Source: Trichosphaerium sp. ATCC 40318
Lineage: Eukaryota > Protista > Tubulinea
Reading direction: 5' to 3'
Assembly: GCA_038496445.1 (NCBI GenBank)
Contig: JALMLS010000489.1
Location: 62,001 to 126,000, forward strand
Length of the DNA: 64,000 nucleotides
The position numbers and the translations under genes were made by a program. Below, piece after piece: positions 1-54,800 of the stretch. The first letter of the stretch is position 1. Each line of letters starts with the position of its first letter. A model generated the notes under the pieces. It ran no database searches and was not told the DNA's origin. It worked only from the letters and a program-made list of their open reading frames with translations.

Positions 1-983
1 ATATCAGATGACGACATTTATGTCTGGGATGTGACAGATCCACTTAATATGGTCCAAGTCCTACATTTCCAAGGTACAGTTTAGCACGTGATAAGATAGT
101 GCTTTTCTGTCATCCAGCATAGCGGAAATGAATTTCTGCTTTTTAATCGTTTTCATCAGGTCGTCAAGGCGCTGCACATAACATCTGGGTTGATGACAGT
201 TGCCGTGTCATGTATGTGACACACGAGCGTATAAACGAGCCGATCACTGTATGGAAAATGTTTGATACACCAGAAGGCGAAATTGATTGGAACACACAAC
301 CAAAATGTACACATACATGATATTCAACTACTAAGCATACTAATACTGCTAAGATCTTGGATCACTTACATCAAACCAGTTCCAAGGCACACTTCCTCAT
401 AATGTGCTTGTCAAAGATGATATTCTTTGGGCAGCTTTTTACAGTGAAGGTACCTCATATCACATGTTAAGATCAACTTTTTGTAAAACGAGAAAATAGG
501 TGTGATTGCTTGGAATATCACAACACCTGATAAACCAACACTTCTTGCTCACTATCAAACATCTAAAATTGAAAGTAAGGCCAGGTAGCATTTTCTTTCG
601 TCTGATCTTTTGTGCTTTAGGCGGACTCGCTGGAGTTTGGGGAGTGTATCCTTTCGCAAAGTCTGGCTATGTGTATGCATCGGACATGCAAGAAGGTACA
701 GGAGATTAATCACGTTATATCGCGTATCACGTGATTTTTCTTTATTGATGTGTTGTAGGTCTTTTTGTGATGGAGTTGGTTGATTCTGAACCTATTGAAG
801 AAGTCAAAGAAGAAAACTACAAGAGTACGTATTTTTATTAATCACGACATTATTCTTCTTTGTACTTATACTATCTTAACAGCGCTCTCTATTGTTCTTG
901 GAGTGGTTGGCTTATTACTTCTCTTTGCGTTAATACTTGCAATCATTATGTACTGGAAAAAGACGCCATACAAACGCGTTTAG
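1..983 (+). CDS. 3' part of a choice-of-anchor B / LVIVD-type beta-propeller protein with a C-terminal TM anchor (multi-exon, 5' end outside window)
   Basis: Spliced reading gives AHNIWVDD, HNVLVKDDILWAAFYSEG, WGVYPFAKSGYVYASDMQEG-LFVMEL, then hydrophobic LSIVLGVVGLLLLFALILAIIMY and WKKTPYKRV-stop. Confidence 0.75.
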
Positions 984-1322
984 ACAATAAACTTCATTTA
1001 GTTCACATTCAGTTTTTGGTTACAACCAAAAATAACCTTTTTGACAAAAATTGCTGATGGTAATCTCGCTACTATCTATTTTACACAAGCCAAATTAACA
1101 ATTAAATTCACCTTTTTTCGTTTTTGAAAGTGACTTTCTTGTTGAGGAACATGGCCTTTTTGGTTAACTATTTGCTTTGAATTTATTTGGCACACGCAGT
1201 TGAAACGCTGTCTTTGTTTGAAAGGATAATAAATAGGAGTTTTGTGTTAGAAGACTGAGGTGAAACGAGATATTTCGAATTCACAAAAGGTGCCATGATA
1301 CAAATTCAGGTTCATACAAGAG

Positions 1323-4300
1323 ATGAAGCTCTTTGTATTGTTTTTAATAACTGCCTCTTTGCTCTACGCTGAAGATGTGTTTCTGAAGGGTGTTGACGTT
1401 CCTGAGTTCGTCATGGAGGATGTGGATACGATTAAACGAAAGCTAGACGCTTATGATGCGTCATTGGATACTTCTTGTATAACAGATGGCTTGTACAAAG
1501 AAATGTACGTTTAATTCTGTACTGTAGCTCTCTCTAACTTCTCAAGGGCATTAATGGCATACAAAACGGCGTCGGAAGTGATGGAAGTTGAAGTTTGTGG
1601 CTCCGATGTCAATGGTATTTCAAACACCGCAGACAGTGTCGACGGCTGTGAAGTACGTTATTGTTACTATATGATTGTGTTTTAATGGCCCATAATGAAG
1701 GTTATGTACAAACCCCATCCACAAGACGAATGTGTTATTGTGCGTATGCCTGCTAGTATTGATGATATGAAAACTCTATGCTCCATGCCTGTGGTAGAAA
1801 AAATACAGCCAAGATCAGTAAGCCAAAAACTTTACACATAAAAATAACTTTTTTTTGCTTGGCATAAAAAATAGTCACGTGATTTTTTCAAAGTACCCAA
1901 ATACGTAGTAGATTGTTCGAAAATCTCGCTTCTATTTCAGGTTATGGTTTGTGTACCATATCATTCACAGCGAGCGAGGGAGGTTTAAATAAAGATGATT
2001 AACTTTTTTAACAGCTTTCAATTGCTATGCGGGATACTGTTTCAGAGGGTGATGCGGCTCACAGAGCAAATCTTGCAAGGGTTTTGGGAGAAGGATCAAC
2101 AGGGAAAGGTGTTAAGATAGGCATTCTTTCAACTTGTATTGATCTTGATGTACGTATCTCAGTGCGCTACGTTCAGTATATTATATTTATTCCTGATTTT
2201 AGGTGTTGGACAACCTTACTTCCTCAGGAGACTTAAATTCCATCACAATCATTACAGATCCACTCACAAATCAAACACAAAATCAACGATTTGGCTGTCG
2301 TAGTGAAGGATCAGCAATGGCTGAAGTTATTTTTGATTTGGCTCCCGATGCAGAGTGTACAAAACATATTGATATTGTTGTTTTTTCTAAATGCTCTTTA
2401 GTGTTCTTTGCTACTGCTGATGGTATTAGGTTCCAATTTGCAAGGAATATCGAACTACTTCGTTTTGAATACGGCTGTGATATCATTGTTGATGATATAT
2501 TTAGATTTGACCAAGCACCTTTCCAAGTGCGTCACGTGATAAATCACTTTTTTTTTGGACTGAAGTTTCCTTGAAAGTATTTTTTACTCATACTGTATAG
2601 GATGATAATATTGCACAATCAATCGACAAGGTCTCTGAAGATGGTGCTTTGTACTTTTCATCAGCAGGAAATATGCGCAGTACGACTTATGACCTAATCA
2701 TTACCTAACTACCTGTGAAAAAAATAGCTCACACATACGCTGTCGATTTCAACGCTGGATTTTTACGACCAGGGGTAGCCTTTCATAGATTTTTATTATT
2801 AGGTCCTCCAGGAAGAAGCACACTTCAACTTACTAATCCTTCAAGTACTGCTAACTTGCTTATTTTCCTTTATTGGTCAGATTCTTTTGTAAGGATTACT
2901 TACGTGCTAGTTTTTTTGACAGATTCATTTTTAGCAAACACCCATTGAGAGATATCGGCTTATAGTGCTCGACAATAATGGAGCTCTTATCCCTCAACTT
3001 TCTGATAGTCAGCCATCTAGAGAAGGTGTACCGAGCCCTTACTCGATTGTAAGACTTCCACCTGGTATTACAGTCAATTTTGGTATTTTCAATTTCGAAT
3101 ACAATGAAACTACATCTCAAAGAAGAATACGGTTGCTTATTCCAGGTATTGACATTCCTGCTCGTCCATCAAATACGTTTGGTCATTCTGCTGCCAAGGC
3201 TTCTTTCTCAGTGGCTGCAGCATTTGCAGGGTCTGGTGACCCAATACAACCTTTCAATGGCTCCACTATTACAGGTACAAACATTAATTTCACTTTTATT
3301 TTTGTTGGTCACGTACGCTCACTTTGTTCTAGAGCAATCCTCTTCACAAGGACCAGTACATATTTTCTTTGATAAAGATGGTAATATTCTGGAAGAAGGC
3401 GTTTACACTGCTGCTCAAGGTGGAGAAGTGAGGATGAAGCCAGACTTCACAGCAGCTGATGGTGTTTCTACATCAACACCTGGCTTCAATCCATTCCGTG
3501 GAACATCTGCATCAGCCTCTCATCTTGCCGCAATTGCTGGACTTGTCCTAGAAAAGTCAAGAATAAACGAAAGAGTACGTCATGTCAAATTGCCAACAGC
3601 AAAACATGTGCTAATATTATTGTATTTAGTCATACATGAACACTGTCTTCAAACTCGCTTCAATTGATATCCATACACCTGGTTTTGATACTCTTTCTGG
3701 ATATGGTGTAGTTGATGCTCTTACATCTGTTCAAATTGCTCATGGTGCTCGTCCTCATCGTGTATTTCCTCGATATCCTCAAAGCCATACTCTCGGATTC
3801 AAGAATCATCCAAACTATGATTGTCCTCATCATCTGTCGGATGTTGATGTATTCTCAAAAGATTGTACCATGGACGATGCTGCATCTCTTGTACAAGAAG
3901 CAGATGATGATTTGGCACTGTATGCGTCAAAGTTCAGCTACAACTATCACAAGTATCCGTTGTCAATCATCTTTGATATTCCAATTGAAGGTTCCTACTT
4001 GTTGAGTGGTGGTCATACGATACAACATATTTATAACCACACAATCGTTGTCAGTATTAGGTACGATATTAACATTGTCATGACAAATAACCACAATATT
4101 AGATACAAAGTGGAGGCTGAGTTCCATGTATCAAAACGAATTAAGTTTGCAGCGCTCGTTCCAGAACACAGTTATCATAATAAACACAAGAAAGTATGTC
4201 AACTTTCTTGATTCAAGTTGCTTGCTCACATTTCTATAATTAGATCGATCTTGGATACATTGATACAGAGCCAGGATACAGTGAAACATATGCAGAAGGT

Positions 4301-4432
4301 CAAGTGTTTTCATCTCAGACAATTGGATCTGTTCTAAATCGTGATCATGTGCATCTCGAAGTGAGTGTACATGAAGGATTACACAAACAACTCACGATTG
4401 ACTCATTGTCCATTCACGTGATATTTCCTTAA
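1323..4432 (+). CDS. Secreted subtilase-family (S8/S53-like, Asp-Glu-Ser type) protein, paralog 1; catalytic Asp replaced by Thr
   Basis: Signal peptide MKLFVLFLITASLLYA; motifs TVSEGDAAHRA, GVKIGILST, SEGSAMAEVIFDLAP, DIIVDDI, YFSSAGN, KPDFTAADGVST, GTSASASH, GYGVVDA; multiple GT-AG introns; TAA at 4430-4432. Confidence 0.85.
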
Positions 4433-4959
4433 AAATGCTGGTGTTCCTGCTTTACTCAATAAAAACTGTTCTAAGATGTAGTACGATGACATTTACTAGA
4501 CGGTGTTTATGCTCTCAATTGCTGACGCGCACTTTAGTGACGTATTTTACCAAAGCAAGGAATACTAAGTGACTAAATGCTTTTTAACATGGTGTCACTG
4601 ACAAACCTATAAACTGTTGCTCATACTACGTATGGAGACTTGTAAAGCAGTGAGTAGCCAAACAGTAATACAGGTAATTTTTAAGTGAAGAACTTTCTAA
4701 TTAGAAAATGCTTTGGTGATTTTCGTGTTTTTGAAGTAAATTTATTTGCCAAGTAAGTAGGTTTAATAAACCCCTTTTACTGTAACTGGTAGGTGTACTT
4801 GCGGGAGGTTTGGAGTTATCATTTTGCTTAGTCTATTTTTGTATGCATTGGATAGGTTAGAAGTACCAGAGATTTGATATCACTTACTAAAACTTGCGGA
4901 AAAAATATATCACGTGATATAACGTACTTTTGTTATTTCTGTTACTTCTAGTCGAAATA

Positions 4960-5160
4960 ATATCCTCCATTTGCACTTGTACTATCTTAATAGCGCTCTC
5001 TATTGTTCTTGGAGTGATTGGGATAATACTTTTACTTCTATTTGCGTTAGTACTGCAATAATTATGTACTGGAAAAAGAAACCATACAAACATGTTTAGA
5101 CAATAAACTACATTTAGGTAGTTCACATTCAGTTTTGTTTTACAAACCAAAATAACCTGT
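4960..5160 (+). pseudogene. Orphan duplicate of the last (TM) exon of the gene ending at 983
   Basis: ALSIVLGVIGIILLLLFALVLQ*...WKKEPYKHV* (disrupted frame) and the following 3' sequence align with 868-1055. Confidence 0.8.
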
Positions 5161-5361
5161 TCCTGAAAATTGGTGGGTCGACTATTACCTATTTAATTAC
5201 GCAAAGGTAAAACAACTTTATTTGGGGGACTACGAACACGGTTGAAACACTGTCTTTGTTTGAAAGGACAAATAAAGAGCATTTTGTAGTAAACTGAGGT
5301 GAAACGAGATACATAGAATTCACAAAAGATACCATGATACAAATTTAGGTTCATACAAGCG

Positions 5362-8300
5362 ATGAAGCTCTTTATATTGTTTTTAATAACTGCCTCTTCA
5401 TATCTCTACGCTCAAGATGTGTTGGAGGGTGACTTTCCTGAGTTCTTCATAGAGAATGTGGATACGATTAAACAAGAGCTAGATGCTTATGCTTCATCAT
5501 TTGATACTTCTTGTATTTCACTTGGCTTGTACAAAGAAATGTACGTCATTCGTTCCGTGGCTTTATCTAACATCTCCGAAGGGCGACAATGACGTACGAA
5601 AAGGCGTCGGAAGTGATGGAAGTTGAAGTTTGTGGCTCTGATATCAATGGTATTTCAAACGCCGCAGACAGTGTAGACGGTTGTGAAGTACGCTACAAGC
5701 AACATACGATTGTGTTTTAGTGACCCATAATGAAGGTTATGTACAAACACCATCCACAAGACGACTGTGTTGTTGTGCGTATGCCCGCTAATATGGACGA
5801 TATGAATATGCTCTGCTCCATGCCTATGGTACAATTAATACAGCCAAGATCGGTACGCCAAAAAACTAAAAACAATCAATCTATTTTCAGGTTTTCGTGT
5901 TAAACCCGTGAAAAATTTGGAATTTATTGTTTACAGCTTTCAACTGCTATGCGGGATACTGTTTCAGAGGGTGATGCGGCTCACAGAGCAAATCTTGCAA
6001 GGGTTTTTGGAGAAGGATCAACAGGGAAAGGTGTTAAGATAGGTATTCTTTCAACATGTGTTGATCCTGAAGTATGTATCTCAGTGTAGTTGCGCTACGT
6101 TCAATGTATTGTATTTATTTTTGGCTTTAGGTTTTAGACAACCTTACTTCCTCTGGGGACTTAAACTCCATCACAATCATTACAGATCCAGATACAAATC
6201 AAACACAAAATGTTTCCCCCTGTCGTCGTAGTACGGGATCAGCAATAGCTGAAGTTATTTTTGATTTGGCTCCCGATGTAGAGTGTACAACCCTATTCAT
6301 TGATGATGTTGTTTTTAAGTGTACTTTTTAGTGTTCTTCGCTACTGCTGCTATTTCTATATTCCAATTTTCAAGAAATATCGAACTACTTCGTTTCGAAC
6401 ACGGCTGTGATATCATTCTTGATCATATTTTATACTTTGCGGAAGCACCTTTCCAAGTGCGTCGTGTGTCACGTGATAACTCATATTGTTAATTTTACTC
6501 CAGTTTTTATAATTTTTCCTCGACAGCATTGTTACTCATATTGTATAGGATGATATAGTTGCACAAGCAGTTGATAAGGTCTCTGAAGATGGTGCCTTGT
6601 ACTTTGCTTCAGCAGGAGATCTTCGCAGTACGACTTATTAGCCTAACCATTCCCTAAACTAAGTGTTTCAAAACAATAGCAAGAGGATACGCTGTTGATT
6701 TCAACGCTAGTATGGTATCACCGGGGGTAGCCCTTCATAGCTTTACAATATTCAATCAATCAGGAGAGAGCATGTTTCAAATTACTTCTTCTTTCAATAC
6801 TGCTACCCTGCCCGTTTTTCTGTATTGGTCGGATTCTTACGTACGGGTTACCTAGTTTTTTTTTCTTTTTTTTTTTTGTGGACAGAAAACACAATATTAT
6901 CAACTACAAACAAAGTATCTCTAGCATCTTCGTAGCGCACAAGATTTTCAAAATTGTTTTTGTAGAAAGCGCGAATGACATTCGGCCAGTAGCTCACATA
7001 TTTCTATAGCAAGAAATTATCGAGACATATGAGATTGTAGCGTTTAATGTTACAACTGGAAATGTTATCCCAGAACTTTCTAGCACTGAGGGAACAAGAG
7101 GAGATGCAGTACTCCCTATTGCATTCATATCATTGCCACCAGGTGTTACTATCAATTTCGGTATTTTCAACTTCAATTACACCGAACCGTCATCTCGAAG
7201 AAGAATAAGGTTGCTTATTCCAAGAGGTTTTACTATTCCTGCTCAACCTTCAAGCACATATGGACACTTTGCTGCTAAATCTTCTTTCTCGGTGGCTGCA
7301 GCAGCAGTGTTTGATGACCCAATACAACCTTTTAATGGTTCGACAATCACTGGTACAGTTTCTATGAACTTATTGTTGTTCTTGCTAGGGTTAACTCATT
7401 GTTTTAGAATCCGTCTCTGCACAAGGACCAGTACATATTTTCTTTGATAAGGATGGTAATATTCTGGAAGAAGGCGTTTACACTGCTACTCAAGGTGGAG
7501 AAGTGAGAATGAAACCAGAATTCACAGCTGCTGATGGTGTTTCTACATCAACACCAGGCTTCAATCCATTCCGTGGAACAGCTGTATCAGCCTCTCATCT
7601 TGCTGCAATTGCTGGAATTGTCCTCGAACAGTCAGGAATAAACGAAAGAGTACGTCATGTCAAATTGCCAACATCAAACGTGCTAATATTATTGTATTTA
7701 GTCATACATGAAAACTGTCTTCAAACTCGCTTCAATTGATATCCATACACCTGGTTTTGATACTCTTTCTGGATATGGTGTAGTCGACGCTCTTACATCT
7801 GTTCAAATTGCTCATGGTGCTCGTCCTCATCGTGTATTTCCTCGATATCCTCAAAGCCATACTCTCGGATTCAAGAATCATCCAAACTATGATTGTCCTC
7901 ATCATCTGTTGGATGTTGATGTATTCTCAAAAGATTGTACCATGGACGATGCTGCATCTCTTGTACAAGAAGCAGATGATGATTTGGCACTGTATGCGTC
8001 AAAGTTCAGCTACAACTATCACAAGTATCCGTTGTCAATCATCTTTGATATTCCAATTGAAGGTTCCTACTTGTTGAGTGGTGGTCATACGATACAACAT
8101 ATTTATAACCACACAATCGTTGTCAGTATTAGGTACGAAATTTAATATTGACGTTGTCAACAAATAACCACAATATTAGATACAAAGTGGAGGCTGAGTT
8201 CCACATATCAAAACGAATCAAGTTTGCAGCACTCGTTCCAGAACATAGTTATCATAAACACAAGAAAGTACGTCACTTTCTTGATTCAAGTTGCTTGCTC

Positions 8301-8505
8301 ACATTTCTATAATTAGATCGATCTTGGATACATTGATACAGAGCCAGGATACAGTGAAACATATGCAGAAGGTCAAGTGTTTTCATCTCAGACAATTGGA
8401 TCTGTTCTAAATCGTGATCATGTGCATCTCGAAGTGAGTGTACATGAAGGATTACACAAACAACTCACGATTGACTCATTGTCCATTCGCGCGATATGTC
8501 CTTAA
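5362..8505 (+). CDS. Secreted subtilase-family paralog 2, predicted catalytically dead
   Basis: Same exon structure as paralog 1; GILSTC (D>T), STGSAI (E>T), SAGD (N>D), GTAVSASH (S>A); stop 8503-8505. Confidence 0.85.
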
Positions 8506-46141: not shown

Positions 46142-48026
46142 TATATGGCTATTCTAGTACATCTGACATCCAAAGGTGAGATTTTGTACAAGTAATTGTA
46201 ATTAACGGTATTTCTACCAAATACCTAGCTAATTGTTTTAAATAAGTACCCAGAGCGTATGTAAACAAAAAAAGCGTGTCAGCTCGACAAGTAAACACGT
46301 ATGTCAAAGAAATAGCGCCGCAATACTTCTGGAACGATGTAGAGAATCAAATTAACAAGTACAACGCTATAGCAAGTCAGTTAAGGGTAAAATCTCTCGA
46401 CGACTGGTATCGCGTTACAAAAGTTGATGTAAGGAAATGCGGTGGCCGTGGTGTGCTAAACAGGTACTTAATTGGTTTATTACATGAAGTTATTTTGTTT
46501 TCTGACAAAAACAAAAGGTACAACGACTCAGTTTCGCAGACACTCGCTGCCTTGTTCCCAAACTACGACTGGAAAGTATGGAAGTTTACGTGCGTAAACT
46601 CATGTTTTTTGAAATCGTTTATGCTTTTTAATGTCACGTGACAGTCATGTGATATTTTTCGCTTTTCGGTGTTGTATTTCTTATGGTTTTCTTATGGTTT
46701 GTATAGTGGCGCACCTACAAGGTATTGGACAGATGAAGACAAACAGAGAAAACAATTAGATTATATTGCATCCGAGTTGAACATTAAAGTTCTCAGCGAC
46801 TGGACGGAGTACACGACCAGAGATGTAATGTACGCACAAAAACCTTAGAAAACGTTAACAATAACATTGTTTAAAGGTTGAATGGAGGAGCAGGCATCAG
46901 AAATAGGTAAGAGCGAGGATTAAACAACAGTGAAAGAACTTTTTTTATTCTTACTTTTTGTTTTAGACATCGGGGCTCTCTTGTCTTGACGCTAACAGAA
47001 TTATACCCTCATCATGATTGGAAATTCAGGTACCACTTTTTCTTTATTTTCTTGATTATCTTTCTTACAGAGCACCAAGGGTATTCATCTCAAAGAAGCC
47101 TTCTGGGTATTGGTTGAATAAAACGAACTTGCTTGGGTTTTTTGAAGATGTGGCAAAAAGCCATGACATTAAAAAACCTGAACTGTGGTATCGTATTTCT
47201 GTATCTCAGCTGATTGATAGTGGAGGTACTGGTATAGGAACTTACTTTCCACAAATATTAAGCGTACTACATCCAAACTTCCCATGGTCTTGGAAGCGCT
47301 TTGGCAAAAACTTGAAAAAATCAACTCAAAGGTACTCACAGTTCTTCAATTTTTTCTTTCTCTAATGATCCTGTTTAGATGGGTAATTGATACAGTTGCC
47401 GAGATATTTCCAGGATCTCAGATCCTTGAAGAACATTGTATTGGATCCAGCCATTCGTCAGGACTACCTCATGTTGTCGATGCTTATGTTCCCGAGTATA
47501 ATCTTGTTATTGAGTATCAAGGTTAGCTTTAATTTGTTTTGTTCTAACTAACGGTAAAAAAGGTGAACATCATTATACTGACGTATTTCCTCATGCAGCG
47601 CCATCAGCAAAATTTGATTTTACTGACGGAGAGAAAGCACAATTCTGTAGAGTAGCAGGTATTAAAACAGACCGAAAAAAACCTCTAGAATAACTTGATT
47701 TTTTTTGCCACAACAACGCGCCATAGTGAGCTCTCACGTGATCTTACTTGTAATTTTTCAATTCTCTTATCAATGATATAACTAATTTCTGACTCTTAGG
47801 CTTATATCTGGTACCTATTCCGTATTGGGTATCTACTTCTGAAGGTATAATAGCCGCTATTAAAGAATGTGCTCCAAATGTTACAATTCCTCATAGTAGG
47901 GATCATAGCAGTTATAAGGGAGATTTTATACCTCAAGTGATTACTAATGGATCCCTTATGAACACTAATCGTAATGGTACTTCCATAACACCTAGTAATT
48001 CTCATGTCAAAGTACTTGCTTCGTGA
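46142..48026 (+). CDS. Second LDDWY-repeat protein (about 3 repeats) with a nuclease-like C-terminal domain (start approximate)
   Basis: LDDWY, LSDWT and PELWY repeats; VDAYVPEYNLVIEYQGEHHY...EKAQFCRVAGLYLVPIPYW. Confidence 0.8.
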
Positions 48027-48674
48027 TAAGAAATTAAGAATGAGAAGAAAACAAGAAAGTGATTCTTCGGCTTGGAAAGTCTGTCCATTGAAAAGAGGCT
48101 CTTAGCGGCGATAAAGTGGTGGATTTGGGCACCAAAGGGTATATGGAGGGCAAACATCAGGTCACGCAGTATTCTTACAGTTAGCTCGCTGTAGCAAGAC
48201 TCACCTTGAAAACAGACTGTGAGTTCATACAACTAACGAAGCCAATTTATTACCAACATTGACTGGTAAAGTACTGACGAATAGATTAATACGTTATTCT
48301 ATAGATTACGATCAAAAATACGGTGGCACACAAACAGGACTTGCGCATGCAAATAAGTCTATGTAAGAAAATAAACAGAACTTATTAAAATATGAGCACT
48401 TCTGCGATTACTTTGTGGAAGATAAATCACGTGTGATGAATCTGAACATTGTAGACTTTACATTTCTTGGTTGTTACATAAAAACATACCTACAAAAGCG
48501 TTGCAATTGGTATTATTGGTGCGTATCATACAATGTCTCTTCGTGACTCCAGAGTATGTTCCAAAATCACAGCAGACCAATAATCACAATCAGGCAATTT
48601 TATCTTTTGGCACATAAAAGTCACAACAGTTCAACTCATGCTTTCAAAGACAACAGTAACAGCATACATACAAC

Positions 48675-50539
48675 ATGATGAAAGCACTTAAATACGATAA
48701 AAGCGGCGATATAAGCAACTTGTCAATCGGACAAGTACCCAAACCATCAATACAGGCAAAAGACGACGTACTCATAAAGGTATACGCGTCAGCAATAAAT
48801 CCAGTCGATTACAAGAGGTCTGAAGGACATCTCCCAATAAAAGAAGAGGGATACCCGATAGTGCCTGGGTACACTAGCGGCAGCAAGTAGCTCGCTGTAA
48901 ACACATTTTAAAAGATGCCTCAGTGGCAAAACAGCTTGTGAAGTTACCGCAAATTTTTCCGCTTATCTTCTGTAGGTACGACGTTGCTGGTGTTGTTGAG
49001 CAAGTAGGCGAGGATGTCAAACGTTTCAAGGTTGGAGACGCTGTCTATGGTGACGTTCAATCAAACGGTTTAACACCAAAACGTAAGTACTTTATTTCTC
49101 CGCCTTTTTGCGTATAAAGTAGCTTTGGAGTTGTATAGCTTCTTAGTATGCGTATCCGTATCATTCAAGTTGAAGCTTTTTTGCACGAAATTGCGAGTTT
49201 TTGTCAGATCTAGACAATCCAAACGGTTTTGACACTTTTTGACATAACTAACAAACCACCCTCAAAAATGTGATCATACCATTGGTGAGTTTGTCGGAGA
49301 AATTGTTGCGGAGCGTTTTATTTGTTAAACGCACGTGATTTTTGGTCCAATACTTTTTATTTACATATTTGTGGTGGCGCTTTCCATCGCTACATCGCTA
49401 CCTATTGAGTAGTTTTCTGTAATTTTAGCCTTCTCATCTTTGTCAATACCCCGAGTACTAGTGGCGTTGGAAGTGCTAGCAGTTTACATGCGTATGTAGG
49501 TAAAATATTGTGAGTATCTTGAGTGCGTATTGATATAACGTGCAAGTTTTTTTGATAGTTGATGATACGGACAAGAATATAAATATCTGACTCCTGCAAC
49601 AAAATTCTTACTTATTTAATTTCTTTTAGAATATGGAGCTATTGCAGAATATGTCGTACGTATTTGCCAGCAGGAATAAGAAGCGCTCAACTCACGTGGT
49701 GATGTTTTTTGTTCACCACACTTTTAGGTCTGCAAAGCATGCTTGCTTGCTAAGAAACCTTCTAAACTTAGCTTCACAGAAGCAGCGGGAGTTCCAGTCG
49801 CTGCTGAAACAGCATATTATGCGTTCAAACTGGGTGAACTCAAGTAAAATAATAAGCATTTGAAAACCTTGTTTACTTACTTTGTGTTTTAGGCAAGGAG
49901 GTAAAGTTCTCATCACTGCTGGTGCGGGTGGTGTTGGTACTTTTGCAATACAAATAGCAAAGAAAATCTTTAAATCAGGAACTATTTACACCACTGGAAG
50001 CTCACCAAAGCTCGAAAAACTGACCGCGTTTGGAGCAGATGAACTAATAAACTACAAAAAGGTTAAGTTTGAAGAGACACTTTCTGATTTGGATCTTGTC
50101 TTTGACCTCACTGGAGAAGCACCAAAAGCTACTAAAGTAGTACGTGAAATATTTAATTATTGAATGTCAAGAATTTGAACAAAGACTTAACGAGTTTAAG
50201 GTTAAAAAAGATGGTAAAACAAGAGTAATAACAGCATCATTCTTTGAACAGATTGAAGGCGTAAAATTCTTTAGTTTGGCTTCTGATGGAAGCATACTTG
50301 ACGCTCTTAATCCTTATTTTGAAATCGGAGATATTGTGGTGGTACAGCAATATAACTAAGATGAGTGATGAGTCAGCAATACTAACTAGTTTTTAGAAAA
50401 TTGAAAAAGAGTTTTCGTTCGATGACAGCATTGCTGCTTGGAAACATGCAATGGAAAGTCGTCCTTTTGGAAAGGTACAATATTAAATTTACTAGTTGTA
50501 TTGATAAACAACCAATAGGTTGTCATTAAACACTTATAA
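48675..50539 (+). CDS. Zn-independent MDR oxidoreductase (NADPH:quinone / alkenal reductase type)
   Basis: MKAL..., SAINPVDYK, PG|YDVAGVV, GAIAEYV, VLITAGAGGVGTFAIQIAK, GKVVI. Confidence 0.9.
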
Positions 50540-50782
50540 AGGGGTACTCAGAACGAAATTGTTTTTGCTAAATAAAAAAAACAGTGCATAATTCCTGCAA
50601 TCTTATTAGTTCCATTGTGCCTTGGAACTGGTTCGATTTGACGAAGGCATTTGTAGCCTGTCAATGATTACATACATTGGTTGTGTCAATGTACGAAAAA
50701 GGTTGCTTAGTGACGAGTAAACTTAAACAGCGTTTGTAAAACAGAACGGTTTTTATTGAATAAAGCAGGAACACCAGTATTT

Positions 50783-53700
50783 TTAAGGACAAATCACGTG
50801 AATGGACAATGAATCAATCGTGAGTTGTTTGTGTAATCCTTCATGTATACTCACTTCGAGATGCACATGATCACGATTTAGAACAGATCCAATTGTCTGA
50901 GATGAAAACACTTGACCTTCTGCATATGTTTCACTGTATCCTGGCTCTGTATCAATGTATCCAAGATCGATCTAATTAAATGTAAACAAACAATGTAGTT
51001 ATCAAGAAACTGACGTACTTTCTTGTGTCTATGATAACTGTGTTCTGGAACGAGTGCTGCAAACTTGATTCGTTTTGATACATGGAATTCAGCCTCCACT
51101 TTGTATCTAATATTGTGGTTAGTCATGTGTTTTATTAAATGGCGGTACCTAATGCTGACAACGACCGTGTGGTTATAAATATGTTGTATCGTGTGACCAC
51201 CACTCAACAAGTAGGAACCTTCAATTGGAATATCAAAGATGATTGACAACGGATACTTGTGATAGTTGTAGCTGAACTTTGACGCATAAAGTGCCAAATC
51301 ATCATCTGCTTCTTGTACAAAAGATGCAGCATCATCCATGGTACAATCTGTTGAGAATACATCAACATCCGACAGATGATGAGGACAATCGTAGTTTGGA
51401 TGATTCTTGAATCCGAGAGTATGGCTTTGAGGATATCGAGGAAATACACGATGAGGGCGAGCACCATGAGCAATTTGAACAGATGTAAGAGCATCAACAA
51501 CACCATATCCAGACAGAATATCAGAACCAGGTGTATGGATGTCAATTGAAGCGAGTTTGAAGACAGTGTTCATGTATGACTAAATACGTTAATATCAGCA
51601 CGTGTTTTACTGGTGGCAATTTGACATGACGTACTCTTTCGTTTATTCTTGACTTTTCGAGGATAAGTCCAGCAATTGCAGCAAGGTGAGGAGCAGCTGC
51701 AGAGGTTCCAAAGAATGGATTGAAGCCTGGTGTTGATGTAGAAACACCATCAGCAGCTGTGAAGTCTGGTTTCATTCTCACTTCTCCACCTTGAGCAGCA
51801 GTGTAAACGCCTTCTTCCAGAATATTACCATCCTTATCAAAGAAAATATTCACTGGTCCCAGAGAAGAGAAGGATTCTAGAACAATGAGTTAACACCAGC
51901 AAGAATAACAATAAGTAAAAAGAAACAGTACCAGTGATTGTCGAAGTATTGAACGGTTGTATTGGGTCACCAGTCCCTGCAAATGCTGCGGCCACTGAGA
52001 ATGAAGACCGAGCAGCAGAATGTCCAAACGTATTTGATGGTCGAACAGGAATTCTAGCACGTGGAGCCAACATTCGTATTCTTCTTTGAGATATAGTTTC
52101 ATTGTACTCAAAGTTGAGAAAACCGAATCTGATTGCAATTCCTGGTGGCAGTGATATAAATGCAAGTGGGATTGGTTCACCACCTCTGGTAGACTGAGAA
52201 CTGGAAAGTTCGGGAATGAACTCGCCAGTAGTATCGTTAAACACTATGATGAAATATTGTTCCGTAGGCATTTGCTACAATTAAAAAATGAGCCAAAGAA
52301 ATAAGAATGAAATCAATGAGTGATACATTTACTCTGTACTTCGTTATATTAAGATAAATTGGTTATGAAGTACAAGTAAATGTAACCAATTGCCTGAATT
52401 TTCTACGGTAGATAAACTTTTGACAGAAAAATACTTATGAAGGCATTTGCAAGTACATATGTAAAAAAAAAAAAAAAAAAGAAAAAACTTACATAAGAAT
52501 CCGACCAATACAGAAAAACATTCAAGTTACTAGTACTATCAGGACTAGTAGAAACTCGAACCAATTCAGTTCCTCCAAATATTTCAAAAAAATGAAATGC
52601 AGGCCCTGATGACGTTGTAGTGTTGAAATCAACAGCGTACGTGTTGGCTAAATTAATGTGAATAGTTAAGTAATGATTTAGAGGTTAAGTTTGTACTTCG
52701 AAAATTTCCGCCTGCTGAAAAAAACAAAGCACCATCTTCAGTGACTTTATCAGCTGATTGTGCAACAATATCATCCTATTCAGCATGAGTAAAAATGTGC
52801 ATTCGACCAAAAAAAAACAACATTATTTCAGTCATATTTTTAGACTCACTTGGAAAGGTGCTTCTGAAAAGTATATAACATCATCAACAATAATATCACA
52901 GCCATATTCGAAACGAAGTAATTCGATATTCCTTGAAAATTGGAACAGAGAAATAAAAGCAGAAGCGAAGAACACTAAAAAAGAGCATGAGAAAAACGAC
53001 ATTTCAGCGAACATGAAAGTTTTTGTACACTCTGCATCGGGAGCCAAATCAAAAATAATTTCAGCCATTGCTGATCCTTCACTACTACACGGGAAAATAT
53101 TCTGTGTTTGATTTGTGAGTGGATCTGTAATGATTGTGATGGAATTTAAGTCGCCCGAGGAAGTAAGGTTGTCTAAAACCTAAAATAAAGAATAAATACG
53201 TCACATAAAACGCCGAACATTGTACAACTACGCCAAGATACGTACATCGAGAATAACACAATCTGAAAGAATACCTATCTTAACACCTTTCCCCGTTGAT
53301 CCTTCTCCAAAAACTCTTGCAAGATTTGCTCTGTGAGCCGCATCACCCTCCGAAACAGTATCCCGCAAAGTAGTTCTATGCTACTCGAAAGTTAAAAGTA
53401 TTCAGCTAACGCGAGATAGCAGGAAAACATTAGTGTACTTTTTTAGCTAATTTCTCTGAATATTTTCTCGAATAACACGTGGTGGGTAATAAGAGTAATT
53501 CTTGATTTGAAAAGAAGTTTGCCACGTGTAGTGCAAACCCACGTGATTACGAAAATATTTATGCTGTTGCGTACCGATCTTGGCTGTATGCTATCTACCA
53601 TGGACATAGAGCAGAGCGTATTCATGTCGTCCATGCTAGCGGGCATACGAACAACAACACAGTCGTCTTGTGGATGGTGTTTGTACATAACCTTCAATAT

Positions 53701-54067
53701 GAGTTAAAACACAATCGCATGTTACCAATAAGCGTACTTCACAGCCATCTACACTATCTGCGGCGTTTGAAATACCATTGATATCGGAGCCACAAACTTC
53801 AACTTCCATTGCTTCCGACGCCTGTTTGTGCGTCATTGATGCCCTTGAGACGTTAGATAGAGCTAAGGGAAGGAACTAAACGTACATTTCTTTGTACAAG
53901 CCAAGTGAAATACAAGAAGTATCAAATGATGAAGCATAAGCATCTAGCTTTTGTTTAATCGTATCCACATTCTCCATGAAGAACTCTGGAGCGTCAGCGC
54001 CCTCAAACACATCTTGAGCAAAGAGAAAAGAAGAGGCAGCGATCAAAAACAATATACAGAGCTTCAT
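50783..54067 (-). CDS. Secreted subtilase-family paralog 3 with intact catalytic residues
   Basis: GVKIGILSDC, SEGSAMAE, FFSAGGN, FFGTSAAAPH; same introns as paralogs 1 and 2. Confidence 0.88.
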
Positions 54068-54800
54068 TGCTTGTATGAGCCTAAAGCAACTTTATATATC
54101 TGATTTTGTGAATTCTCTGTTCTCGTTTCATCACGGTGCGCTGATAACACAAAAAACCTTATTAATTAATCATTAATTCGTCGTGTAATGCTCTGATGAA
54201 GGCAGAAATTAACTACGTGCAGGTCATGTGAAGTAAATTGATCGTCAGGTCTAAATGTTGTTACGGTAGTTCAAAGGAACTAAAATACGCTTCAACCAGT
54301 TGATCATGATAAATACTACAAGTCAATCAATAAAATAAATCAGACTTACAATCTGCGTGAACCTTCTTGTTCCGATGTGCACAAATAACACAAAGTAAAA
54401 TGATTTGATGCCTACCAGGTAGGCTTGCGCCTTAAAAAACAGTCACAAAAAAAAAAGTTAACCGTGAACTTGAAGGAGATTACGATCAAAGGCCAATTGG
54501 AGGAGCGATGCTCTTATGTCAATGGTAAGGTTGTAGAGCACAAGAGGTGGCGTAATAATGCTCAAGTATAACAAGACGTGTTCGCTTCTAATTAAGTTGA
54601 TATTAAAGTGCCTGCTTTTTAAAGTTTAGAATTCTTACCACTGGTATACACTTGTACCTTATTGAATAATATTTGATCGAACAAAAACAAATTATTGTAC
54701 AGTTGTATTTATTTATGAATAAAATTGAAACATTCGCTATTGTACTTACTACGTTACAAAACTCTTTTTAAAGAGATAACTGATAGCAATTGTAGCGATG

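Follow-up and report, generated by a model that had tools for sequence, protein, structure and literature searches.

A survey of 53 subtilisin-like structures published in 2024 distinguished only two catalytic arrangements (PMC11593635). In the sedolisins (family S53), Glu serves as general base at the position of the subtilisin His, the acid Asp follows four residues later in the same helix, and the oxyanion residue is also Asp (PMC2635056, PMC11593635). Catalysis can be lost on this scaffold, as in the Csp set, in which CspB is active and CspC and CspA are pseudoproteases kept for binding or signalling (PMC3567191, PMC6636752, PMC7200643, PMC12880746). Here, we describe a small family of putatively secreted subtilases with Glu at the position of the catalytic His, encoded in a 64,000-nucleotide (nt) stretch of the amoeba Trichosphaerium sp. 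ATCC 40318 (GenBank assembly GCA_038496445.1, contig JALMLS010000489.1, positions 62,001 to 126,000 of the forward strand; hereafter the window, whose own numbering is used throughout). On balance, we consider it reasonably probable that the window holds three of the four loci of a secreted amoeba family derived from a bacterial Glu-type clade, and that one of them, copy 2, is a retained pseudoprotease.

Active-site residues of the three window copies

We aligned the three stretches and placed GT..AG introns so as to hold the reading frame, which yielded an uninterrupted coding sequence for every copy (Table 1). Each gene is split into 13 exons by 12 introns of 41-218 nt that occupy the same positions in all three and have mostly GTAYG-type donors; G+C content is ~37% across the window. 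A preliminary description of this DNA had held the open reading frame (ORF), signal peptide, and splice sites of copy 2 to be intact, in agreement with the 782 codons without a stop and the 12 GT..AG introns of our model. The predicted proteins begin with Met-Lys-Leu and a hydrophobic stretch resembling a signal peptide, and each would consist of this signal peptide, a propeptide-like region, a catalytic domain that carries a jellyroll insert, and a C-terminal orphan domain rich in His. Joined proteins were used to compare the copies with one another and with their relatives, and single exons or open frames served as queries in the searches and fold analyses. Codon coordinates were computed, apart from two kinds that were placed by hand from the exon coordinates, the Asn codon of copy 3 and the second one in each Asp-Asp pair.

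The motif differences previously listed for the three paralogs were all present in the exon models. Copy 3 has every family-invariant active-site residue, namely D175 (LSD, 53263-53261), E214 (EG, 53080-53078), D261-D262 (52885-52880), N296 (GN, 52706-52704), and S523 (GTSAAAPH, Ser at 51703-51701). Copy 1 carries Thr at the semi-conserved Asp (LST, 2132-2134) and ...ASH for ...APH in the nucleophile motif, and retains E215, D262-D263, N297, and S525. In copy 2, which also reads LST (6054-6056), Glu is replaced by Thr (6233-6235), the oxyanion Asn by Asp (6618-6620), and the nucleophile Ser by Ala (7581-7583). A further change, absent from the earlier list, turned the Asp-Asp pair (6421-6426) into Asp-His (IVDD>ILDH; His codon 6424-6426) at a family-invariant site, and the nucleophile motif shows Ala>Val beside the Ser, as well as Pro>Ser. 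The Glu>Thr replacement involves all three codon bases (GAA to ACG) and adjoins a one-codon insertion; it may represent one multi-nucleotide event rather than three independent hits.

Alignment with the relatives described below defined 85 columns conserved in at least 93% of them, of which 18 are mismatched in copy 4 (a further locus, outside the window), 21 in copy 3, 24 in copy 1, and 28 in copy 2. Mismatches common to the amoeba clade fall mostly in the jellyroll insert, where all amoeba copies keep the Trp-x-Asp of the relatives, Asp-Tyr-Asp occurs in copy 4 only, and the Gln and Glu of Gln...Gly...Pro-x-Glu and the Arg of Asp-Gly-Pro-Arg (245 of 245 relatives) are replaced throughout. 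At the near-invariant active-site columns, copy 2 alone departs (Glu>Thr, Asp>His, Asn>Asp, Ser>Ala, and the adjacent Ala>Val). The departures of copy 1 are the Thr at the semi-conserved Asp and the Pro>Ser of the nucleophile motif, both common with copy 2, and a few columns of 95% conservation. The full set of clade residues (Glu-Gly, Asp-Asp, Ala-Gly-Asn, and Gly-Thr-Ser-Ala-Ala-Ala-Pro-His) is found in copy 3, and all but the Pro in copy 1 and in copy 4 (Thr instead); copy 2 lacks the Glu, one Asp, the Asn, the Ser, and the Pro.

With neither base nor nucleophile, no Asn at the oxyanion position, and only one Asp left in the Asp-Asp pair, the predicted product of copy 2 would, as these comparisons show, be unable to hydrolyse peptide bonds by this mechanism. 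An alternative nucleophile in copy 2 was considered and rejected, given that the base and the oxyanion residue are lost as well. Copies 3 and 4 probably are active peptidases, and copy 1 may be active, since the Asp of LSD is Asn in 14 relatives that have every other invariant residue. This position also bears on the proposal, made in the preliminary description, that catalysis was lost stepwise along the paralogs. That proposal depends on the LSD Asp being catalytic and is not supported by the comparison, in which Asp occupies the position in only 95 of 111 relatives (86%) and Asn in 14 otherwise intact members (13%).

Selection on copy 2

Codon models of the GY94 type with branch-specific omegas (nonsynonymous to synonymous rate ratios, dN/dS) were written for the purpose and applied to four taxa. 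For exons 1-9, omega was 0.53 in copy 1, 0.55 in copy 2, 0.43 in copy 3, and 0.18 in the background; omega = 1 was rejected for copy 2 both in these exons (P = 0.025) and over the whole gene (omega 0.61, P = 0.039). These per-paralog ratios place copy 2 modestly below 1, the value that would speak against selection for a pseudoprotease. In the N-terminal half of the core, the site of three of the lost residues, omega of copy 2 was 0.37, and lineage counts by parsimony agreed with the maximum likelihood estimates. Exonic insertions and deletions (indels) among the window copies were multiples of three in 11 of 11 cases, as opposed to 15 of 45 in introns. Despite ~127 lineage-specific substitutions, copy 2 has acquired no stop in its 782 codons, and it has kept the 12 splice-site pairs and the upstream element of the family.

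In copy 2, only exon 10, which encodes the Ser motif, shows relaxation. There, omega reached its upper bound in copy 2 (essentially no synonymous change) and was 0.10 in copy 1 and 0.16 in copy 3 (heterogeneity P = 0.0014); exons 10-13 of copy 2 gathered 14 nonsynonymous and 4 synonymous changes, with ~10 of the 14 in exon 10. Together, since catalysis is lost while the fold core and the C-terminal domain stay under purifying selection, these data lend moderate support to copy 2 being, most likely, a retained pseudoprotease.

A bacterial clade with Glu at the position of the catalytic His

The Pfam model PF00082 matched only the exon 10 ORF of the amoeba genes (23.2 bits in copy 3; gathering cut-off 21.8), and on the bacterial relatives it scored 35-48 bits over the C-terminal half of the model only (profile positions 133-288). 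NCBIfam returned no family for any of the amoeba pieces, and its one match to the bacterial relatives, to mycosin, was below threshold. PDB sequence searches with single exons returned weak subtilisin matches at the Ser motif, or none; of 142 PDB sequence hits, the 60 best included no S53 chain. A word search with the open frame of copy 4 retrieved 179 proteins, all matching PF00082 and mostly metagenomic; the named ones derive from bacterial metagenome-assembled genomes and are titled 'S8 family serine peptidase'. HMMER against 1.84 billion representatives yielded 1662 hits, 647 below 1e-10 and none below 1e-30; the libraries contain no protein closer than E 1e-21. These alignments were confined to the Ser region and never covered the C-terminal domain, and the closest relatives reached at most ~50% identity over ~130 residues. 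A profile of 25 bacterial members matched exons 4, 5-6, 7, 10, and 11 in every copy (E 1e-42 to 1e-4).

In the relatives, the base position reads Glu-Gly for His-Gly, with Glu in 112 of 112 and Gly in 112 of 112. The earlier remark had been that subtilases with Glu at the His position are known mainly from prokaryotes, and the residue is invariant in this large prokaryotic clade. Also conserved are the Thr-Ser of the nucleophile motif (258/258), the Asn of Ala-Gly-Asn (133/135), and the Asp-Asp pair with which a core strand ends (131/131 and 130/131). Position +4 after the Glu is Met in 113 of 122 relatives, and also in copies 1, 3, and 4. HMMER pairs subtilisin Asp32 with an invariant Ser and not with the LSD Asp, which lies one residue later; we also observed a near-invariant His 22 residues before this Ser in the bacterial clade (P0121-P0258).

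Evidence on the fold comes from an AlphaFold model of a bacterial relative rather than of the amoeba proteins (P0171, 616 residues; predicted local distance difference test score 91.3). As in subtilisin, the Glu forms the N-terminus of a helix in this model, a helix begins directly behind the Ser, and a strand precedes the Asn. In a structure search with the model, S8 chains scored Z 28-35 and sedolisins Z 22.3-27.3. We equated the Glu with the subtilisin His on three grounds, namely the E-G/H-G motif, the modelled start of a helix at this residue, and the succession of the elements along the chain. Canonical S8 genes of the Trichosphaerium assembly are likewise split by introns and offer no contiguous ORF for a profile-profile alignment of the base region. 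The invariant Asp-Asp lies on the strand that packs against the acid and the base in subtilisin. With Glu as presumed base, Met in place of Asp at +4, and Asn as oxyanion residue, the clade, as judged from these residues, fits neither S8 nor S53 as defined. In CDD, proteins of this kind are grouped as 'S53-like'. Nothing relevant emerged from literature searches for a name or description of the Glu-type clade, which found no characterised member, solved structure, or paper.

Family size and origin

A six-frame search of the Trichosphaerium assembly (70.3 Mb, 642 contigs) with exon 10 matched five places. In addition to the window copies, an intact copy 4 of 776 codons (locus L006) lies on the same contig, ~35 kb beyond the window end, with the same 12 intron positions and D/E/N/S retained. 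Its pairwise synonymous divergence (dS) from each window copy amounts to 1.1-1.4, and it is the older copy. The fifth place is a 22-kb contig (C471) whose positions 1-7056 are collinear with window positions 47183-54242 at 99.5% identity (blastn, 7065 aligned columns), and which departs from the window sequence just upstream of copy 3. Coding sequences of the two differ by a dS of 0.008, and this contig is probably the other allele of copy 3, left in the assembly as an unmerged haplotype, and not a fifth locus. Searches of the assembly with the profile of bacterial relatives and with the C-terminal domain each matched these genes only; what had been called a three-member family thus has four loci.

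At least a dozen other loci of the assembly match the ordinary Pfam S8 model, for example C24:328949-329341, C4:827579-827950, and C28:167486-168418, and are unrelated to the Glu-type family. One locus obtained in a contig-library search with the exon 10 alignment was discarded, since the match extended over 16 residues within a gene for the beta subunit of glycyl-tRNA synthetase and was due to chance. Contamination with bacterial DNA was rejected, as the genes contain 12 spliceosomal introns and the four copies are linked.

The phylogeny with bacterial homologs, suggested earlier as a check, recovered the amoeba copies as a monophyletic group (support 1.0) on a long stem, where the midpoint root also falls. 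Within the group, the protein tree joins copies 1 and 2 as sisters, then copy 3, with copy 4 outside. The sisterhood of copies 1 and 2 would fit a shared first step of loss; the paralog history is blurred by gene conversion, with informative nucleotide sites divided 40/37/28 over the three possible trees. The contigs read for four top hits carry only bacterial-type neighbour gene families (4 of 4), and the relatives are uninterrupted ORFs; the large library has no taxon labels, so that a eukaryote among the weaker hits is possible.

The genes are firmly eukaryotic in their structure, and transfer from bacteria is the simplest reading of these data. It is most likely the route by which the family entered the lineage, and would predate both the gain of the 12 common introns and the branching of copy 4 (dS > 1). 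Horizontal transfer followed by intron invasion had been put forward in the preliminary description, and is plausible insofar as the nearest relatives are bacterial and nothing closer occurs in the libraries; the donor and the direction do not follow from the tree, with its long unplaced branch.

Jellyroll insert, C-terminal domain, and upstream element

The jellyroll insert (strands 307-415 in the P0171 model) is the fastest part of all three window copies, with branch lengths of 0.6-0.7 per codon and an omega of 0.69 that is not distinguishable from 1. The C-terminal domain is the most constrained part of the family (omega ~0.1). Its His content is 8.4-9.5%, compared with 1.4-1.9% elsewhere, and 10 His are common to all four copies; no relative of this domain was found in Pfam, NCBIfam, the HMMER search of 1.84 billion representatives, or the ESM Atlas.

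The 3' ~900 bp of the window copies, introns included (3333-4432, 7408-8505, and 51876-50783), are only 0.5-5% diverged, as compared with 10-40% further 5' and 30-40% in the jellyroll exons. This mosaic of diverged jellyroll exons and near-identical 3' ends with their introns indicates gene conversion that has apparently spared the jellyroll insert.

A 27-nt element, composed of GTGAAACGAGA, 5-6 nt, and GAATTCACAA, lies upstream of all four copies; no further match was found in the window, where 0 are expected by chance. Since it has been kept in copy 4 at dS > 1, it is a candidate family-specific promoter or 5' untranslated region element.

Table 1. Coordinates of the family genes and of their parts (window numbering, unless a locus is given)
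Feature	Position	Strand	Remarks
Copy 1	1323..4432	+	13 exons, 783 codons; exon model, exons matched by the bacterial-clade profile
Copy 2	5362..8505	+	13 exons, 782 codons; intact ORF, GT..AG introns
Copy 3	50783..54067	-	13 exons, 780 codons
Jellyroll insert, copy 2	6680..7352	+	exons 8-9, between oxyanion Asn and Ser; fastest-evolving part
Jellyroll insert, copy 1	2728-3274	+	same exons
Jellyroll insert, copy 3	52647-51932	-	same exons
Exon 10, copy 2	7408..7649	+	Ser-motif exon; ~10 lineage-specific replacements by alignment inspection
C-terminal domain, copy 2	7807..8505	+	exons 11-13, ~200 residues; orphan, His-rich; omega ~0.1
C-terminal domain, copy 1	3735-4432	+	same exons
C-terminal domain, copy 3	51474-50783	-	same exons
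Upstream element, copy 1	1260..1286	+	~40-65 nt before the ATG
Upstream element, copy 2	5299-5325	+	40-65 nt before the ATG
Upstream element, copy 3	54132-54106	-	40-65 nt before the ATG
Upstream element, copy 4	L006 ~3728-3752		40-65 nt before the ATG

Discussion

The Glu-type clade combines the Thr-Ser nucleophile and the Ala-Gly-Asn oxyanion element of subtilisin with Glu-Gly in place of the His-Gly base. In the reading that we favour, copies 3 and 4 would act as peptidases; copy 1 is short of the semi-conserved Asp only. A binding role is probable for copy 2, with the cleft for substrate, the rapidly evolving jellyroll, or the C-terminal domain as the contact site. By analogy with CspC and CspA for CspB, it might partner or regulate the active paralogs.

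Several observations weigh against this interpretation. Rejection of omega = 1 in copy 2 is modest (P 0.025-0.04), and its omega does not differ from that of copy 3 (P = 0.15-0.50). Regarding the earlier claim of a pseudoprotease under selection, the moderate signal persists (omega 0.55-0.61, in-frame indels, splice sites kept), and copy 2 is no more relaxed than copy 3 outside exon 10 (P = 0.50). Omega is raised in all three young copies (~0.5 versus 0.16-0.18 in the background), and gene conversion blurs the tree on which the tests were run, in which informative sites divide among the three topologies as given above. The amoeba clade forms a long branch that the tree does not place inside bacteria, the acid of the Glu-type clade has more than one candidate (the LSD Asp and the Asp-Asp pair), and both the retention of copy 2 and the activity of copies 3 and 4 are deduced from sequence.

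The same data might be taken to mean that copy 2 is a young unprocessed pseudogene whose low 3' divergence is due to conversion by copy 1. Four to five invariant active-site residues are gone from it, exon 10 has ~10 lineage-specific replacements and an omega at the upper bound, the whole-gene omega of 0.61 is marginal (P = 0.039), and the 3' part has been homogenised together with its introns. We nevertheless find this unlikely, as the omegas of 0.37 in the N-terminal half of the core and 0.55 in exons 1-9 were obtained in regions that are 10-40% diverged and not recently converted, all indels specific to copy 2 are in frame, its 12 splice-site pairs and upstream element are intact, and ~127 lineage-specific substitutions have left 782 codons without a stop. 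A different challenge concerns the direction of descent: that the family is an old, vertically inherited eukaryotic gene lost elsewhere, or that it passed from eukaryotes to bacteria, would agree with 12 intron positions common to copies at dS > 1, with a long stem for which no bacterial sister is resolved, and with ~18-21 of the 85 clade-conserved positions differing even in intact copies. This scenario is rather improbable in our view, with hundreds of bacterial cluster representatives set against one amoeba clade, no relative closer than ~50% over ~130 residues among the 1.84 billion representatives, and relatives that are uninterrupted ORFs among bacterial-type genes.

It might further be questioned whether the Glu-type clade is proteolytic at all. 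Were its members binding proteins, or other hydrolases or ligases on a subtilisin scaffold, the 'catalytic loss' of copy 2 would be the loss of another activity or of nothing. The literature searches indeed found no characterised member or paper on the clade, the His is absent, the match to Pfam S8 is limited to the C-terminal half of the domain, and the presumed acid Asp is not invariant. Yet the invariant residues coincide precisely with three elements of the subtilisin core, its base, its nucleophile (Thr-Ser), and its oxyanion motif (Ala-Gly-Asn) (PMC11593635), the S53 enzymes provide a precedent for Glu as base on this fold (PMC2635056), and a propeptide-like region is present, as in zymogens, all of which makes a non-proteolytic clade very improbable. 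Retention of copy 2 as a pseudoprotease beside active enzymes of bacterial ancestry therefore remains the interpretation we prefer.

Comparison with known subtilases

The best structural matches to the P0171 model are canonical S8 enzymes (PF00082), that is, Vpr, Tk-SP, pro-subtilisin E, and thermitase (Z 31-35), with which the Glu-type clade has in common the GTSxAxPH nucleophile motif, the oxyanion Asn, the order of elements, and the propeptide. However, S8 enzymes have an Asp-His-Ser triad with His-Gly at the base, where copies 1, 3, and 4 have Glu-Gly and copy 2 has Thr-Gly. The sedolisins (MEROPS S53: kumamolisin, sedolisin, and TPP1) display the same clan SB fold (Z 22.3-27.3) and the Glu base, but their helix Asp at +4 and oxyanion Asp are replaced in the Glu-type clade by Met (113/122) and Asn (133/135), respectively. 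An S53-like oxyanion Asp occurs in the dead copy 2 only, with Asn in copies 1, 3, and 4.

Neither dead protease paralogs nor bacterial genes in amoebae are a novelty, and the pseudoprotease alone would therefore be a modest result; the more useful point is that a Glu-type clade of hundreds of clusters fits neither arrangement of the 2024 survey. As a tentative and rather doubtful extension, the clade could embody a third way of arranging catalysis in the subtilisin superfamily, a living link between S8 and S53, with a Glu base, an Asn oxyanion residue, and an acid supplied by its own strand or by the Asp-Asp 'CHO' strand, and the amoeba set of enzymes and pseudoenzyme could use its His-rich domain and jellyroll to recognise targets in a manner dependent on pH or metal. 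Within one scaffold, the amoeba family presents a natural series, from intact (copies 3 and 4) through loss of the semi-conserved Asp only (copy 1) to loss of everything (copy 2), which makes the acid residue, an acid activity of the Glu type, and the role of a retained dead copy accessible to experiment.

The closest parallel to such a set is provided by the Csp subtilases (PDB 4i0w, 6mw4, 9pr8, and 9pr9), which combine a subtilisin fold, a retained prodomain, and a jellyroll insert, as the P0171 model does. CspB, CspA, and CspC gave the longest structural alignments to this model (373-428 residues, Z 25.7-30.9), at 11-16% identity. A partner or receptor role for copy 2 would be by analogy only, as the Csp proteins occur in Firmicutes spores and belong to the canonical S8 enzymes with an Asp-His-Ser triad, whereas the amoeba proteins are of the Glu type, presumably secreted, and equipped with a different C-terminal domain. 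In both families, however, one member appears to be catalytic while others have been kept after losing residues of the triad.

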